Sequence record: OP617745.1
Direction: 5' to 3' (one strand)
Length of the DNA stretch: 64,000 bases
Positions 2,380 through 46,388 of this stretch are shown here, one piece after another. The notes under the pieces are model-generated. The model was not told where the DNA came from and did no database searches. It worked only from the letters and a program-made list of their open reading frames with translations. The translations under genes were made by a program, and so were the position numbers. Each line of letters begins with the position of its first letter. The first letter of the stretch is position 1.

Positions 2380-3007
2380 AAAAAGTGATTTAGTTCACGG
2401 ATTTGGTATAAATGATATACCTAGAGATTCAAAATTAGATAGTGATTATTATAGATGTTATGGTATATGGGTTGGATTTTTGCGTAGATGTTATAGTAAT
2501 AATAGATCTCTAAAGAATATTTCATATACAAATACTGTTGTATGTGACGAGTGGAAATACTATTCAAATTTCAAAATATGGTATTATAATAATTACATAG
2601 AAGGTTATCAAATAGATAAAGATGTAATTGGTGGTACATTAGATATATATTCACCAGAAACGTGTGCTTTCATACCTAACTTGATTAATAGCTGTATTAT
2701 TGATGGTAATAGAAAAGATAAGAGTACGCCAATTGGTGTTTCATTATCTATATATAAAAACAATGTCAAGTACAGAACCTGTATAACAAAATATGGTAAA
2801 CAATTAAAAAATTTCGGTTTATATGATAATCCGTATGATGCACATAAAATTTGGCAAATTGAAAAACGTAATTATCTTTTAGAATTAATTGATAAGTACA
2901 GTAATGATGTGGTACCAGAAGTCATTCAAGGATTACAACGACGAGTTGATATTTTGAATAATGATATTTTAAATGGAATAGAGACAAAAACAATAAGTAA
3001 AGTATAA
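2363..3007 (+). CDS. HNH-family homing endonuclease-like protein
   Basis: Phage HNH-like pattern RRCY...VCDEW..YSNF..W...IDKD...YSPETCAFIP..IN; paralogue of 4062-4739. Confidence 0.75.
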   Translation: MRKGSKKSDLVHGFGINDIPRDSKLDSDYYRCYGIWVGFLRRCYSNNRSLKNISYTNTVVCDEWKYYSNFKIWYYNNYIEGYQIDKDVIGGTLDIYSPETCAFIPNLINSCIIDGNRKDKSTPIGVSLSIYKNNVKYRTCITKYGKQLKNFGLYDNPYDAHKIWQIEKRNYLLELIDKYSNDVVPEVIQGLQRRVDILNNDILNGIETKTISKV

Positions 3008-29522: not shown

Positions 29523-29609
29523 ATCTGTACAAGAATATCATTTGTGATATAATAATTAAACAGAGAGTGATGTAGCTCTCTTTTATATAGCTTAGGGAGT
29601 ACTAAGACA

Positions 29610-30674
29610 ATGAAAGAAAAAGTTTATGTATATATTGGACGTTTCCAAATTCCACATATTGGTCATGAAGAAGTCCTCAAACATGCAATCAAAATTGCAG
29701 ATCGTGTTATCATTCAGGTCGGTTCAAGTGAACTGGCTCGTGATCCAAAAAACCCATTCACGTTTGAAGAACGTAAGTCAGTACTAGAAGAAATTACAAA
29801 ACGTGTAGCTCAAGATGAATGGAATAAAGGTCGAACTGTTAAAATCGATATTATGCCATTACATGATTATGTATATGATAATAATGCATGGCTAAAAGAA
29901 GTACAGGATAATGTTAAAACATGTACTTCAAGTAATGATATTACTATTACCGGTTGTCGTAAAAATGGTGATACCAGTACTGAATATCTTAACTATTTTC
30001 CTCAATGGAAAAATGACTTCATTAACGAAGTACAAAGTAATGCAAAAGGTACTATTAGTAGTACTGAACTACGCGAAGCTTTTTTTGTCTCTGGTAAAGT
30101 TCCAACTGAATTTGTTTCAAAAGAAACAACAGAATTTCTAGAAAATTTTGTCAGTACTAAACCCGATGTATTCGATAATCTTATTAAAGAATATGAATTC
30201 ATTAATCGTTATATTGAACAAATGAAAGAAGCACTACCTTATGATATTCCATTTATTTGTGGTGATGCTGTAGTCATTAGTTGCGGGCATGTTTTACTTG
30301 GTCGCAGGAGAACATTTCCATCAAAAGGTTCTTTGTGTTTACCGGGGGGTTTTTTTCAAAGTTGGGATGATAAAGATCAAATTGATACTGCAATTCGTGA
30401 ACTAAAAGAAGAAACAAAAATTGATGTTCCTGAAAAAGTTCTTCGTGGTAATATTATAAAAACTGAAGATTTTACTGATATGAATCGTTCTCTCCGCTGG
30501 CGTATTCTTACTAAAGCAGTGTTGATACAATTACCAGATACTACTTTACCAAAAGTTAAAGGTAGTGATGATATGTGTAATGCTCAATGGATTCCATTGA
30601 GTGATATTGAAAAATATCGAGATCAATTTTTTGAGGACCATTATTCAATTATTAATAATTTGTTAAATTTATAA
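29610..30674 (+). CDS. nadM: Bifunctional NMN adenylyltransferase/ADP-ribose pyrophosphatase (NadM-Nudix)
   Basis: GRFQIPHIGH, ISSTELR, Nudix box LPGGF...AIRELKEET, GSDD. Confidence 0.92.
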   Translation: MKEKVYVYIGRFQIPHIGHEEVLKHAIKIADRVIIQVGSSELARDPKNPFTFEERKSVLEEITKRVAQDEWNKGRTVKIDIMPLHDYVYDNNAWLKEVQDNVKTCTSSNDITITGCRKNGDTSTEYLNYFPQWKNDFINEVQSNAKGTISSTELREAFFVSGKVPTEFVSKETTEFLENFVSTKPDVFDNLIKEYEFINRYIEQMKEALPYDIPFICGDAVVISCGHVLLGRRRTFPSKGSLCLPGGFFQSWDDKDQIDTAIRELKEETKIDVPEKVLRGNIIKTEDFTDMNRSLRWRILTKAVLIQLPDTTLPKVKGSDDMCNAQWIPLSDIEKYRDQFFEDHYSIINNLLNL

Positions 30675-41907: not shown

Positions 41908-42483
41908 ATGAAACTTTGTAAGCATTGCCAGAAACCAAAATTCAAACATCAACGTGAAACACTGAATTGTCCAAGTCCAACTCGTTCATTGGCTGCGAAT
42001 TTTAATAGTACAACTGTATATGATGAATATGAATCCGATCCAGTACATTATGCTATTGCACAAGTACAATTGAAAGCTGATATTGCTGAAATTACTGCTG
42101 GTCTTGATGAACTTCTTGCTAAAGGTGATATTAACGAACAGTCGTATAAAATGAATTTAGCAAATGCAACTGCTAATCTTACTCGTATTGCTGAAAATAG
42201 TAAACGCGAAGAATTTGAACCTAATGCAGTACTGAATATTAACTTCAATGGTGAAAAATATTCATATAGCGTAGAATGGCGTGATAATGACTTAATCGGA
42301 ACTGATGATGCAATTTATGATCTGTACTTTAGTGATAAGTATAAAGTACAAAAAGATTCTGGTGTAGAACTGGTCATTATGGTATGTGATAATGAAAGTG
42401 GTAAACAATCTTTATGTACTTATGATCCAATTCGTGCTGAATTCAAAAGTATTGGAACTATTAATAACAATGAGGATTATTAA
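41908..42483 (+). CDS. Hypothetical protein with N-terminal CxxC
   Basis: CKHC...H...C at the N-terminus. Confidence 0.75.
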   Translation: MKLCKHCQKPKFKHQRETLNCPSPTRSLAANFNSTTVYDEYESDPVHYAIAQVQLKADIAEITAGLDELLAKGDINEQSYKMNLANATANLTRIAENSKREEFEPNAVLNINFNGEKYSYSVEWRDNDLIGTDDAIYDLYFSDKYKVQKDSGVELVIMVCDNESGKQSLCTYDPIRAEFKSIGTINNNEDY

Positions 42484-42701
42484 TGATCATCTATGCTGTT
42501 CAGGAAATTGATTTTTATACTGAAGAATACGACAATCAAAAAATTCGTAAATTATTTTTAAATTTAGACGCTGCACTTAATTATGTAAAAACTACATATG
42601 ATATTAAAATTACTAACGTTAATACATGTAAAACATATATCGAAAATGATGAAGAACGTGGAGAAGTTTCCGTTGGTATTTATGAAATGAGTGTGTTATA
42701 A
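42483..42701 (+). CDS. Small hypothetical protein
   Basis: TAATG overlap. Confidence 0.65.
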   Translation: MIIYAVQEIDFYTEEYDNQKIRKLFLNLDAALNYVKTTYDIKITNVNTCKTYIENDEERGEVSVGIYEMSVL

Positions 42702-42723
42702 TTAAATAGTTTTTAACAAACAA

Positions 42724-42842
42724 GAAAGTACTGTCACCGTGCATCTGGGTAAAATCAGTATAAGTCCGTAAAGCACAATGCAAATACTCAACAATCTCCC
42801 TACTCCTTGAGATCTACCAAAGTTGAGGGTGGTAGTACTTTC
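42724..42842 (+). ncRNA. Candidate ~120-nt structured small RNA (three-way junction)
   Basis: 15-bp closing stem 42724-42738/42828-42842 with two G-U pairs; inner stems GTGC/GCAC, CTCAAC/GTTGAG, ATCTC/GAGAT; extended -10 TGTTATAAT at 42694-42702. Confidence 0.6.
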
Positions 42843-42852
42843 ACCTTTTTAG

Positions 42853-43104
42853 ATGAGAAACATTATGATTTTATTAATTATTACTACAGTACTGTTAGGA
42901 TTATTCAATTGCTGGATTTATTCAAGAATTGAAAAGAAAGAAGGATATTGCTTTCATAGTACAAAAGATGGTCAATTGGTTTCAATGTTTAGTTTAGAAA
43001 CCCCATCAATTTGTAAATTCTTTATTCTTTTACAATTCATCCCGTTTGTTAATATTGTTTTCGCACTTTTATATTTCGTAGATATTCTTAATGGACATTT
43101 ATAA
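42853..43104 (+). CDS. Small membrane protein
   Basis: Two TM segments. Confidence 0.65.
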   Translation: MRNIMILLIITTVLLGLFNCWIYSRIEKKEGYCFHSTKDGQLVSMFSLETPSICKFFILLQFIPFVNIVFALLYFVDILNGHL

Positions 43105-43760
43105 TGAATATTAAAACAACCGCAGATAAGTACTGGTTCATTATGAACCACCCAAAGTTTTTAAATAAAAATTTCATCACACCAAAAATTGAAATTGAAC
43201 CACATAACGTATGTCCACAAACCAACAGAATTGAACCGTATGAATATTTGAATACAAAAGTCCAGTACTGGATTGAATTTTTTATCCCAGTACATGAGGA
43301 TGGAAAGTGGGATATTGCACATGATTACAAACATGATTGTGGTGGTGATACAATAGATGAAGCAATTGACTGCTTATACAATTCAGTACTAAATGAATAT
43401 GGAAATTATACACAAGAAGAATTAGACAAAAAAGAAGATGAAGTATATGATTACAAAAAATTCAAGGTTGGTGGTGCAACAATGTCATATATTTTATCTA
43501 AAATTCATGAAGACCTGTTTGAATACGCAAATGATAAAATTGTAACAGATGAAGAAGCAGAACCCTATAATAACAACACAGTTGGTTATTATGAAAACAA
43601 AATTAAAGAATTAAAAGGAACTTTAAATTCATTAATCGAATTCAAAAGAAATTCACCAAAAGAAATGCACAAAGTAATTGACAAAGACATAAAAAACGTA
43701 GAACATGACATTTTTGCGAATGAAATGAGTATTAAATTTATGGTGGATTTGGATCTATGA
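43104..43760 (+). CDS. Hypothetical protein
   Basis: Coupled ORF, 218 aa. Confidence 0.75.
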   Translation: MNIKTTADKYWFIMNHPKFLNKNFITPKIEIEPHNVCPQTNRIEPYEYLNTKVQYWIEFFIPVHEDGKWDIAHDYKHDCGGDTIDEAIDCLYNSVLNEYGNYTQEELDKKEDEVYDYKKFKVGGATMSYILSKIHEDLFEYANDKIVTDEEAEPYNNNTVGYYENKIKELKGTLNSLIEFKRNSPKEMHKVIDKDIKNVEHDIFANEMSIKFMVDLDL

Positions 43761-44125
43761 ATAAAGATCTTTCAAAATTAGTTGAAGACCTACGGAATAT
43801 GCCGAAAATTGAACAAGTTGGTTCGTTTAAACGTTTCTTAGTTATTGCACGTGCATTAGATAAAAAGGGACGTGTACTCAGTACCAAAACCAATTCATAC
43901 ACACAAACACATCCAGTACAGAAGAAGTTTGCAGTTAGGGCTGGACGGTGTGAAGCTGTATGGCTCCATGCAGAAATTCGTTGTTTGTTAGCTGCAAGAA
44001 AAGATGTTCATACATTACTAATTGCCAGAATTAACAAAGAAGGTCTTCCTGTTCCAGCAAAGCCATGTTCTGTTTGTGAACTGGCTATAAAAGAATATGG
44101 TGTAAAAAGGGTGATTTATACATGA
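43757..44125 (+). CDS. Zinc-dependent cytidine/deoxycytidylate deaminase-fold protein
   Basis: HAEIRCL and PCSVC motifs. Confidence 0.75.
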   Translation: MNKDLSKLVEDLRNMPKIEQVGSFKRFLVIARALDKKGRVLSTKTNSYTQTHPVQKKFAVRAGRCEAVWLHAEIRCLLAARKDVHTLLIARINKEGLPVPAKPCSVCELAIKEYGVKRVIYT

Positions 44126-44421: not shown

Positions 44422-44447
44422 AAAAGCACCCTAGTGGTGCTTTTTTT
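44422..44447 (+). terminator. Rho-independent terminator
   Basis: AAAAGCACC-ctagt-GGTGCTTTT then T-run. Confidence 0.8.
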
Positions 44448-44579: not shown

Positions 44580-46388
44580 ATGAATCCAAATAAATTATAT
44601 GAAGATATTGAAAATTTAATTAATAATACAAATAAGGATATTACTACTGAAAATGCTAATAAAGATGCAAAAGTAGTTAATACTCATAGAGATTTATTGG
44701 CTGGTATACTTTCTAAACATTACGCCCAAGATACGATCCCAGAAGAATTTATTAAATGGCATAATGATGGTTATGGTCACTGTCATGATTTGGATTACTG
44801 GATCTCATCATTAACTAATTGCTGTCTTATTAATTACCCAGATATGCTTAGAAATGGTTTTAAAATTGGTAGTGCTAACATTGAAGAACCAAAAAGTTTT
44901 TCTGTGGCTTGTACGGTACTAACACAGATTGTGCAAGCGGTTGCAAGTTCACAATATGGTGGACAATCATTAGCTCACATTGACAAATATTTAGAACCAT
45001 ATGTTCAAATGTCATGGAATAAACTATTAGAAAAACAAAAGAAATATAATTTAAGTACCGAATTCATTGAAGACGAATTAAAAAAAGAAGTTTATGATGG
45101 GTGTCAAACATTTTTATATCAATTAAACAGTACTGTGTCCGTGTCAGGTCAAACCCCTTTCATATCTATTAGTTTAGGTTTAAGTACTACTAAATTTGGA
45201 CGTTTAATTACTGAACAATATTTAAAAGTTCATGAAAAAGGTTTAGGTAAAGATGGCATTACTCCAGTATTTCCGAAAGTTATTTTCTTTTTAGAAGATG
45301 GTATTAATGCTAATAGTACTGATCCAAATTATGATTTAAAACAACAAGCATTACATTGTAGTTCTAAAAGAATTTATCCTGATTTTGTTAGTGTTAAATT
45401 AAATAAAGAAATCACGGGTAGTACTGCTGAAGCTGTTACTCCAATGAGTTGTCGTTCATTCCTTTCCAAATGGATAAATGAAGATGGCGAAGAGCAATAT
45501 AATGGCCGCTGCAATTTAGGGGTGGCATCAATCAACCTACCGTTAATCGCTCTTGAAAGTACGTCAGACGACGTTTTCTTTGACAAGTTACACCATCACA
45601 TGGACATGGCATATCGCTTCTTATCGCTTCGTGTAGAGCGTTTAAAAGACACAAAAGCCCGACAGAACCCAGTACTGTACATGTACGGAGCCTTAGCTCG
45701 TTTAGATCCAGATGAGACTATCGAACAACTATTTTACAATGGCAGAAGTTCCATTAGTATTGGGTATGTTGGTTTATCTGAATGTTCTGAAATTCTTAAA
45801 GGAAAAATAGACAAAGATTTTGGATTAAAAGTACTAAAATATATGCAAATGAAATGTAATCAATATAAAGAAGAAACTAATATCGCATATAGTTTATATG
45901 GAACACCAGCCGAAAGTTTGTGTTATAAATTTGCAAAAATTATTAATGAGAAATACCCCTCTGTATTGAATAGAGATTACATTAGTAATTCATTTCATTA
46001 CCCAGTTCATTATGATATTTCAATTTTCGATAAATTTGAATATGAAAGTTTATTTGGAAATATCAGTTCAGGTGGCAATATTAGTTATGTTGAAACCCCA
46101 AACCTTTCTAATAATTTAAAAGCATTAGAAACAATAGTTGATTATGCTAGTACGAAAGTACAATATTTCGGCATAAATCAACCAGTGGATCACTGCTATA
46201 AATGTGGTCATGATGGTCAGTTCAACGTAGATAAAAATGGATATAGTTGCCCGCATTGTGGTAATAATGATGAAAGTACTATATCAGTTTGCAGACGCGT
46301 TTCGGGTTATCTAGGAGCACCAAATAGTCGTCCATTCAATAAGGGGAAACAAAGTGAAGTAATAGCTCGCAAAATCCACAAATATTAA
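44580..46388 (+). CDS. nrdD: Anaerobic ribonucleoside-triphosphate reductase (class III)
   Basis: ENANKDA, H.HDLDY, NCCL, SQYGGQ, SGQTPF, PMSCRSFL, GRCNLGV, YGTPAESL, CxxC..CxxC, RRVSGYL. Confidence 0.96.
   Translation: MNPNKLYEDIENLINNTNKDITTENANKDAKVVNTHRDLLAGILSKHYAQDTIPEEFIKWHNDGYGHCHDLDYWISSLTNCCLINYPDMLRNGFKIGSANIEEPKSFSVACTVLTQIVQAVASSQYGGQSLAHIDKYLEPYVQMSWNKLLEKQKKYNLSTEFIEDELKKEVYDGCQTFLYQLNSTVSVSGQTPFISISLGLSTTKFGRLITEQYLKVHEKGLGKDGITPVFPKVIFFLEDGINANSTDPNYDLKQQALHCSSKRIYPDFVSVKLNKEITGSTAEAVTPMSCRSFLSKWINEDGEEQYNGRCNLGVASINLPLIALESTSDDVFFDKLHHHMDMAYRFLSLRVERLKDTKARQNPVLYMYGALARLDPDETIEQLFYNGRSSISIGYVGLSECSEILKGKIDKDFGLKVLKYMQMKCNQYKEETNIAYSLYGTPAESLCYKFAKIINEKYPSVLNRDYISNSFHYPVHYDISIFDKFEYESLFGNISSGGNISYVETPNLSNNLKALETIVDYASTKVQYFGINQPVDHCYKCGHDGQFNVDKNGYSCPHCGNNDESTISVCRRVSGYLGAPNSRPFNKGKQSEVIARKIHKY

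Follow-up and report, generated by a model that had tools for sequence, protein, structure and literature searches.

A conserved structured RNA at the head of the DNA-precursor genes of RaK2-like jumbo phages

What is a compact RNA structure doing in the gap between two genes of a giant phage? The question is raised by a stretch of 64,000 nucleotides (hereafter the window) from record OP617745.1, the 357.7-kb genome of the Klebsiella phage KP13-7 (genus Alcyoneusvirus). Window positions equal positions of the record minus 186,000, and the 1-kb region around the structure is 100% identical. About 120 bases on the + strand (the element) lie here in an unannotated gap between the + strand genes 42483-42701 and 42865-43104. 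An original prediction, made from the letters of the window, had drawn a three-way junction of the stems P1, P2 and P3, preceded by an extended -10 promoter sequence and followed by a U-run. It had proposed either a trans-acting small RNA (sRNA), displaying a loop complementary to Shine-Dalgarno (SD) sequences, or a new cis-regulatory motif. According to our analysis, it is strongly supported that the element belongs to a genuine, previously uncatalogued and apparently undescribed family of structured RNAs that is specific to RaK2-like jumbo phages. A leader controlling the downstream genes is more likely than a free sRNA that blocks ribosome sites.

When the 1-kb region was used as a blastn query, the distant Erwinia phage Hallingskeid aligned solely over window positions 42723-42847, which is the element itself, and the Hallingskeid copy is likewise intergenic and on the coding strand. 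Homologues were collected by blastn with three different members, by fetching loci via the neighbouring protein, and by exact-pattern scans with the invariant core over IMG/VR, JGI metagenomes and GTDB genomes. Blastn places the family in 34 phage records, and several uncultivated jumbo-phage contigs from IMG/VR and metagenomes carry it too; all of these are RaK2-like jumbo phages. The phage records span Alcyoneusvirus, Eneladusvirus, Mimasvirus, EJP2 and unclassified phages. Among the carriers are RaK2, K64-1, Muenster and the KP13-7 group, Serratia phage BF, the Erwinia pEa_SNUABM phages, Yersinia phages fHe-Yen9-03/04, Cronobacter phage GAP32, Pectobacterium phage CBB, Xanthomonas phage XbC2, Erwinia phages Kaldavass and Hallingskeid, Klebsiella phage fENko-Kae01, Salmonella phages Munch, 7t3, SE_PL and PHA46, and Escherichia phage EJP2. 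No true copy was found by core-pattern scan in 185,579 bacterial and archaeal genomes, where the eight hits were GC-rich chance matches without downstream motifs. As far as these scans reach, the RNA family is confined to phages.

All sequence features of the original prediction (extended -10, P1, P2, P3, loop and U-run) were located in the window where it had placed them, and RNAfold of 42715-42852 returned the three-way junction as drawn, at -32.5 kcal/mol. The + strand folds with a z score of -2.84 and only 1 of 200 shuffles folds as well, whereas the reverse strand, at z -1.0, folds no better than shuffles. The G-U pairs of P1 and P2 are compatible with the + strand only. The parts of the element and its immediate surroundings are as follows.

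42673-42702, + strand: sigma-70-like promoter with -35 TTGGTA, an 18-nt spacer and extended -10 TGTTATAAT (promoter scan, 10 of 12 matches, upstream TG)
42724-42842, + strand: the structured element, about 120 bases
42724-42738, + strand: P1 5' strand GAAAGUACUGUCACC (sequence, RNAfold, covariation)
42739-42744, + strand: joining strand J1/2 GUGCAU, with GUGC invariant in 22 of 22 aligned members
42745-42758, + strand: P2 hairpin CUGG/(U)CAG with A-rich loop GUAAAAU (CTGG at 42745-42748, TCAG at 42755-42758)
42759-42769, + strand: near-invariant unpaired strand UAUAAGUCCGU (alignment)
42773-42781, + strand: P2b mini-hairpin GCA-CAA-UGC of 2-3 bp, seen by eye and weakly supported, overlapping the GCAC that had been assigned to an outer P2
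42787-42792, + strand: P3 5' strand CUCAAC (covariation)
42794-42813, + strand: P3a hairpin AUCUC/GAGAU with the invariant CCCUACUC at 42798-42805 (RNAfold, alignment)
42814-42820, + strand: conserved unpaired CUACCAA, with ACC invariant in 21 of 22 aligned members
42822-42827, + strand: P3 3' strand GUUGAG (RNAfold, covariation)
42828-42842, + strand: P1 3' strand GGUGGUAGUACUUUC (sequence, RNAfold, covariation)
42843-42864, + strand: linker with ACC, a U5 run at 42846-42850 and a weak SD (GAG), not terminator-like

In KP13-7, P1 consists of 15 bp with two G-U pairs. The arms of P3a (ATCTC at 42794-42798 and GAGAT at 42809-42813) enclose the loop CCTACTCCTT at 42799-42808, and the ACCA core of the adjoining unpaired strand is, by eye, also kept in the locus L055 and in EJP2. 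P3 abuts P1 without a spacer and therefore probably stacks on it; the stacked stems would form a helix of about 21 bp. The extended -10 TGTTATAAT (42694-42702) overlaps the TAA stop codon (42699-42701) of the upstream open reading frame (ORF) 42483-42701.

The stems are borne out by covariation. A covariance model, R1, was built from 22 distinct sequences and the hand-set P1/P2/P3 structure (EJP2 and XbC2 were added later). In the model-fitted alignment of these 22 homologues 97.1% of the cells pair, versus 34-51% after a shift of the 3' partners by 1-3 columns. Changes on both sides are seen in 16 of 25 pairs (all seven of P3 and nine of the 14 in P1), and none of 500 shuffles matches the observed covariation score. 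P3, for example, is CUCAAC/GUUGAG in KP13-7 and CAGGGU/ACCCUG, CAUUGA/UCAAUG, CUGGAAU/AUUCCAG or CAGAGAG/CUCUCUG elsewhere. RNAalifold recovers the same P1, P2 and P3, an agreement that is not fully independent because the alignment was fitted to the model. Searched with R1, each locus yields a single copy, at 102-131 bits for the coding strand versus 17-20 bits for the reverse strand; EJP2 reaches 78.6 bits and XbC2 127.7 bits. The proposed structured RNA on the + strand thus held up, both in its folding energy and among its homologues.

The joining strands and loops are conserved in a different way from the stems: the stems vary, and about 45 unpaired positions, in joining strands and loops, are invariant. 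The joining strands read GUGC, then UAUAAG(U/A)CCGU, then an AAUAC-like sequence. The P2 stem (CUGG/CCAG, with UCAG in KP13-7) is 100% paired, changes only from G-C to G-U and always carries an A-rich loop; as it never varies beyond this, it is conserved, yet unproven by covariation. An outer P2, GUGC/GCAC, had also been predicted. Both arms are present in KP13-7 (GTGC at 42739-42742, GCAC at 42773-42776), but GCAC is found only in the KP13-7 lineage and, coincidentally, in the loci L009, L011 and L040. In relatives the outer P2 is replaced by the separately covarying mini-hairpin P2b, whose arms shift by compensation (GCA/UGC, CUC/GAG, CGC/GCG, AGC/GCU) and which occurs as GCA-CAA-UGC, CUC-AUA-GAG, CGC-ACA-GCG, AGC-UUA-GCU and, in the GAP32 type, GC-N6-GC. 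Since the outer P2 is not kept and P2b is present, a more faithful drawing places P1, P2, P2b and P3 about a junction whose joining strands are long and invariant.

The inner P3 hairpin AUCUC/GAGAU is stable only in the KP13-7/RaK2 lineage and, as a shorter UCC/GGA form, in Hallingskeid. For 16 of the 22 members no structure is predicted inside P3, which there ends in a loop of about 22-27 nt that holds the invariant CCCUACUC and the near-invariant (C)UACCAA. Every member displays the C-rich CCCUACUC single-stranded at the tip of P3. Conservation of the predicted stems in related phages therefore extends to P1, the CUGG/CAG hairpin and P3, and not to the outer P2 or a stable inner P3. A switch in which AUGCA would pair with UGCAU, both of which KP13-7 contains, was likewise rejected, because RaK2, whose copy is 98.6% identical to that of KP13-7 over the element, reads AUGUC.

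When all pairs of columns were scanned for complementarity, no conserved pseudoknot emerged, only 3-nt options and the 4-bp GCCG/UGGC. The pairings GUAU/AUAC and ACGC/GCGU, picked out by eye, fail in Hallingskeid, L009 and fENko. A kink-turn in P1 was also discarded: KP13-7 has C-G in place of the A-G mismatch, and a 3-nt bulge is lacking. Two sequence forms of P1 occur in the family, one being GAAAGUACU.../...AGUACUUUC with a palindromic AGUACU core and the other GAGAAAUACAA/UUGUAUUUCU, and both are conserved past what pairing alone requires.

No catalogued family accounts for the RNA. Rfam 15 gave no gathering-level match in the window, which agrees with the suggestion of a new motif. At E up to 10 the region 42400-43100 yielded noise only (Afu_182 with 15 bits versus a gathering score of 65), and six other members, searched at the same threshold, hit no consistent family. 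ARAGORN detected no tRNA or tmRNA gene in the window. Models of known self-cleaving ribozymes (hammerhead, twister, pistol, hatchet and hepatitis delta virus-like) matched neither KP13-7 nor six relatives at E up to 10. No description of the RNA was found in the literature, the bulk catalogue PMC10690425 not having been compared.

The position of the RNA is as constant as its fold. Every locus has it on the coding strand, with 13-32 nt between P1 and the next start codon; in annotated loci the upstream stop codon precedes P1 by 6-23 nt (6-8 nt in BF, Yen9-04 and fENko). The sigma-70 promoter is seen in KP13-7/RaK2 and a TATAAT hexamer in Yen9-04, with no comparable match discernible by eye upstream of the other homologues, where the preceding coding sequence extends to a distance of a few to about 25 nt from P1. 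The U-run after P1 gives way to UUAAC or AAUUAA in relatives, the family consensus being YUUUAAKU followed by the SD, and a terminator scan found no terminator-like site in or after the element. Promoter and U-run are therefore peculiar to a lineage rather than features of the family, and the RNA probably belongs to an mRNA. A metatranscriptome contig from wastewater spans 42695-42926 and reaches into the next gene, although at a depth of 2.4 it is weak evidence, and such contigs show neither transcript ends nor direction. The genes that follow the element in KP13-7 include the following.

42865-43104, + strand: 79-aa membrane protein (so annotated in related records), the first downstream gene, in a slot that varies between phages
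43104-43760, + strand: phrog_16370 protein, 218 aa (PHROGs match), 0-1.7 kb downstream of the element wherever checked
43757-44125, + strand: deoxycytidine monophosphate (dCMP) deaminase
44580-46388, + strand: NrdD, anaerobic ribonucleotide reductase, at the end of the conserved block

The conserved downstream order is phrog_16370 (210-230 aa), dCMP deaminase, thymidylate kinase or an AAA protein, and nrdD; the upstream genes are MazG-like, GroES and tyrosyl-tRNA synthetase. In most phages phrog_16370 directly follows the RNA. Other genes intervene in KP13-7 (the 79-aa membrane protein), Hallingskeid (73-aa), fENko and 7t3 (126-aa), XbC2 (an S-adenosylmethionine methyltransferase and another gene) and the loci L019 and L021. 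Despite these inserted genes the RNA still heads the block, which fits control of the unit rather than of a single gene. The site right after the RNA is a hot spot of insertion (window 42843-43104; L002, L005, L019, L021 and L067), one of the inserts being a small protein that begins SYRTYKQWKKKGRQV. The first downstream ORF of KP13-7 has in-frame ATG codons at 42853 and 42865, of which the record uses the latter; neither is preceded by a strong SD.

From sequence and setting, we lean towards an RNA that acts in cis, of whatever kind. Our leading explanation, narrower and more tentative, is that of a riboswitch, a cis-acting leader which would bind an effector and control an operon for the supply of deoxynucleoside triphosphates (dNTPs). 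Two observations suggest it: the aptamer-like pattern of covarying stems with invariant junction and loop nucleotides, and the position at the head of a metabolically coherent block in every locus examined, even though the first gene varies. The element would be transcribed within an mRNA, as the leader or an intercistronic region of the DNA-precursor block. Its invariant core would fold into a compact tertiary pocket that binds an effector, and occupancy of the pocket would alter the output of the downstream cistrons, via access to the nearby ribosome-binding site or via polarity. As effector we favour a small molecule, bound by a riboswitch-like aptamer, and a metabolite of nucleotide metabolism would be the obvious candidate. 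The fullest version, in which a new class of giant-phage riboswitch would sense a metabolite of the (deoxy)nucleotide pathway and tune the dNTP-supply operon to the state of the infected cell, is doubtful as judged from the sequence. The operon would then comprise an uncharacterised protein that may be akin to a dGTPase inhibitor, together with dCMP deaminase, deoxythymidine monophosphate (dTMP) kinase and NrdD.

Several observations count against the riboswitch. When 18 members were folded thermodynamically, with the next start codon included in each, P1, which is long (10-15 bp across the family), formed every time and the SD window was left mostly open (unpaired probability 0.39-0.90). No conserved alternative that would sequester the SD or form a terminator, and hence no expression platform, was found in these 18 members, the only recurrent alternative pairing in the column scan being the 4-bp GCCG/UGGC; this missing platform is the chief weakness of a riboswitch. 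The sequence alone points to no ligand. Moreover, the gene immediately downstream of the RNA varies, the distribution is narrow (a single phage supergroup), and 121Q-type Asteriusviruses as well as Vibrio and Shewanella phages possess phrog_16370 without the RNA nearby (it was not found near this gene in 121Q, JNE01, Vibrio 11895-B1 and Shewanella 1/4). In GAP32-type members a weak pairing of UUUCUUUU with GAGAGGAA was noticed, by eye only.

Known systems offer a parallel. The purine and 2'-deoxyguanosine (2'-dG) riboswitches (RF00167 and relatives) are junction-type aptamers in the leaders of nucleotide-metabolism genes, and in Mesoplasma florum the 2'-dG class is found ahead of ribonucleotide reductase genes. 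Like them, the phage RNA arranges helices around a junction closed by P1, combines covarying stems with invariant joining strands and lies in the mRNA leader of DNA-precursor genes. Unlike them, it has no Rfam match at E up to 10, no conserved complementarity (kissing) between the P2 and P3 loops, a P1 of 10-15 bp versus a few pairs, an extra mini-hairpin and a conserved loop of about 25 nt; no expression platform was found, and the RNA is known only from jumbo phages.

A P1 that is always formed beside an open SD fits a factor that acts by its bulk. This leads to a second kind of cis control, a protein-binding translational operator or ribonucleoprotein, in which a protein of the phage or the host would dock on the rigid rod of P1 and P3 and on the invariant loops and would block or trap the ribosome at the SD, 5-15 nt away. 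The RNA would not have to refold, and a stable P1 with an open ribosome-binding site suits such steric control better than it suits a switch that refolds. As partner, the phrog_16370 protein is the candidate, whose gene stands directly behind the RNA in most genomes, and the spacerless P1/P3 helix, if stacked, would offer it about 21 bp.

No search identifies this protein: phrog_16370 has no Pfam match, no sequence match in the PDB and no useful lead in the ESM Atlas, and PHROGs gives no function. An AlphaFold model of residues 1-107 (predicted local distance difference test 88, predicted template modelling score 0.80) shows an N-terminal domain of alpha-beta-beta-beta-alpha topology. The top 50 matches of an unbiased structural search are mostly double-stranded RNA-binding domains (dsRBDs), including those of DCL4, RNase III, DGCR8, PKR, Staufen and ADAR, with Z scores of 4.5-6.0 over 65-83 aligned residues. 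These Z scores, however, lie within the range that the tool itself calls a "common arrangement", Foldseek matches to dsRBDs are weak (E 0.2-1), and T7 Gp1.2, a protein inhibitor of the host dGTPase, matches equally well (Z 5.8). Where RNA-binding dsRBDs carry a basic KKxAK motif, at the start of helix 2, phrog_16370 has an acidic D-T-x-E-E-A (D-T-x-(D/E)-E-A in the alignment). The C-terminal half is a helical hairpin, which dominates searches with the whole protein. The N-terminal domain is also present in Vibrio and Shewanella phages of about 130 kb. A likeness to HicB/UPF0150 through a GGxTxEEA motif found no support from any tool and is not claimed here.

The genomic arrangement also speaks against this partner, because many phages carry the phrog_16370 protein without the RNA, and intervening genes separate the two in KP13-7 and in no fewer than four further lineages. 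Autoregulatory protein-binding mRNA leaders as such are well established, as in the operators of T4 genes 32 and 43, the ribosomal-protein leaders and the E. coli thrS operator. The phage RNA resembles them in placing a structure a few nucleotides upstream of the SD, in needing no refolding and in having a possible binder encoded directly downstream in most genomes. It differs in that its candidate protein lacks a basic RNA-binding motif and other genes intervene in several lineages. We regard an operator for the phrog_16370 protein as an unlikely rival and not as the lead explanation.

In the view of the original prediction, the element is a free-standing, trans-acting sRNA whose C-rich loop pairs with SD regions, for instance that of the nadM leader. 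KP13-7 and RaK2 invite this view, since a good extended -10 promoter ends about 22 nt before P1 and a U5 run begins 3 nt after it. In addition, CCCUACUC is invariant and unpaired in all members, and KP13-7 UACUCCUU can pair with AGGGAGUA at 29594-29601, within the SD of a nadM-like gene. The promoter is, however, missing from most relatives, where the upstream stop codon comes close before P1; a GC-rich terminator hairpin is absent, a start codon follows within 13-32 nt in every genome, and the shallow wastewater contig reads on into the next gene. The display of an unpaired C-rich sequence is thus a family trait, but its complementarity to the SD is not: only CCCUACUC is invariant, and the SD-complementary CCUU is restricted to the KP13-7 lineage and contig L042.

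Potential targets of the loop, counted in the 64-kb window as complements of the P3 loop, are not enriched either. AGGGAGTA, the match in the nadM leader, occurs once versus 0.78 expected by chance, GAGTAGGG with one mismatch occurs 12 times versus 14.2 expected, and neither of two 14-nt extended loop complements exceeds chance; TTGGTAG, at 14 versus 7.4 expected, is marginal. We consequently consider a trans-acting anti-SD regulator improbable on sequence grounds; of the two alternatives first put forward, the new motif is the one supported. The UCCC-loop sRNAs of Staphylococcus, which act in trans through C-rich loops that pair with SD sequences, share with the phage RNA an invariant C-rich, G-poor single-stranded sequence at the tip of a helix. 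Unlike these sRNAs, the phage RNA lacks a conserved promoter and terminator and is embedded in an operon, its CCCUACUC is no canonical anti-SD, and its targets are not enriched. The nadM-like leader itself (window 29584-29612, + strand, start codon at 29610) holds its SD AGGGAG in the loop of a CUUAG/CUAAG hairpin.

It is less probable again that the element serves RNA processing or stability, with the rod of P1 and P3 as a site for RNase III or another nuclease, or as a protective 5' structure; a new self-cleaving ribozyme would be a variant of this idea. In an early or middle mRNA with several cistrons, such an element would keep the cistrons apart and stabilise them, much as the RNase III sites do in the T7 early transcript. 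The intercistronic site on the same strand as its neighbours, which lie close on both sides, is consistent with this role, as are the AU-rich helix of 14-15 bp abutting one of 6-7 bp and the semi-conserved A/U-rich YUUUAAKU just 3' of P1. With the T7 sites the phage RNA shares a conserved intercistronic helix of about two helical turns in a polycistronic phage mRNA. In contrast to them it has a large invariant multi-helix core, and about 45 invariant unpaired nucleotides and an invariant P2 would be needless for a nuclease site. Against the ribozyme variant stands the lack of a match to any known ribozyme model at E up to 10.

That the element is a chance fold or a conserved coding remnant, as small hypothetical ORFs annotated over it in three records might suggest, is already refuted for practical purposes by the covariation (compensatory changes in 16 pairs), as well as by indels not in threes, the lack of a conserved ORF across the element and the asymmetry between the strands (102-131 versus 17-20 bits). 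The three annotations, each of a small "hypothetical protein" across the RNA, are at NC_027399.1 316564-316701, at 2872-3000 of locus L026 (MK773491.1) and at PP191103.1 135400-135519. Given the covariation and the non-triplet indels in the alignment, these ORF calls are probably spurious.

To our knowledge, few structured regulatory RNAs belong to phages themselves. We found no description of one from the RaK2-like jumbo phages, a group with several members under study as therapeutic agents against Klebsiella, E. coli, Salmonella and Erwinia. The covariation and invariant core of the RNA are on a par with those of validated riboswitches, and it heads genes for DNA precursors. Should it sense a metabolite, it would represent a new ligand-RNA pair and show directly how nucleotide pools are monitored by a giant phage; should it bind a protein, a new translational operator of phages would be defined. 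In both cases, its 120 nt form a compact target that is easily tested and comes with natural compensatory mutants. The nearest reported items are ncRNA001-004 of the Pseudomonas jumbo phage PA5oct, non-coding RNAs of 236-619 nt defined by RNA sequencing, two of which lie in terminal repeats (PMC7318152). They resemble the present RNA, compared by description only, in being non-coding RNAs of a phage related to the RaK2 group.

Two further observations concern the surroundings of the element. One is a 9-bp hairpin with T-runs on either side (window 44422-44444), which lies between small ORFs and nrdD (44580) and is terminator-like on both strands. Upstream, a wastewater contig from a close relative has 856 other letters in place of the 232 bases at window 42234-42467. 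Together with the two-piece alignment of phage RCIP0023, this replacement points to an insertion/deletion polymorphism at the end of the gene 41908-42483.

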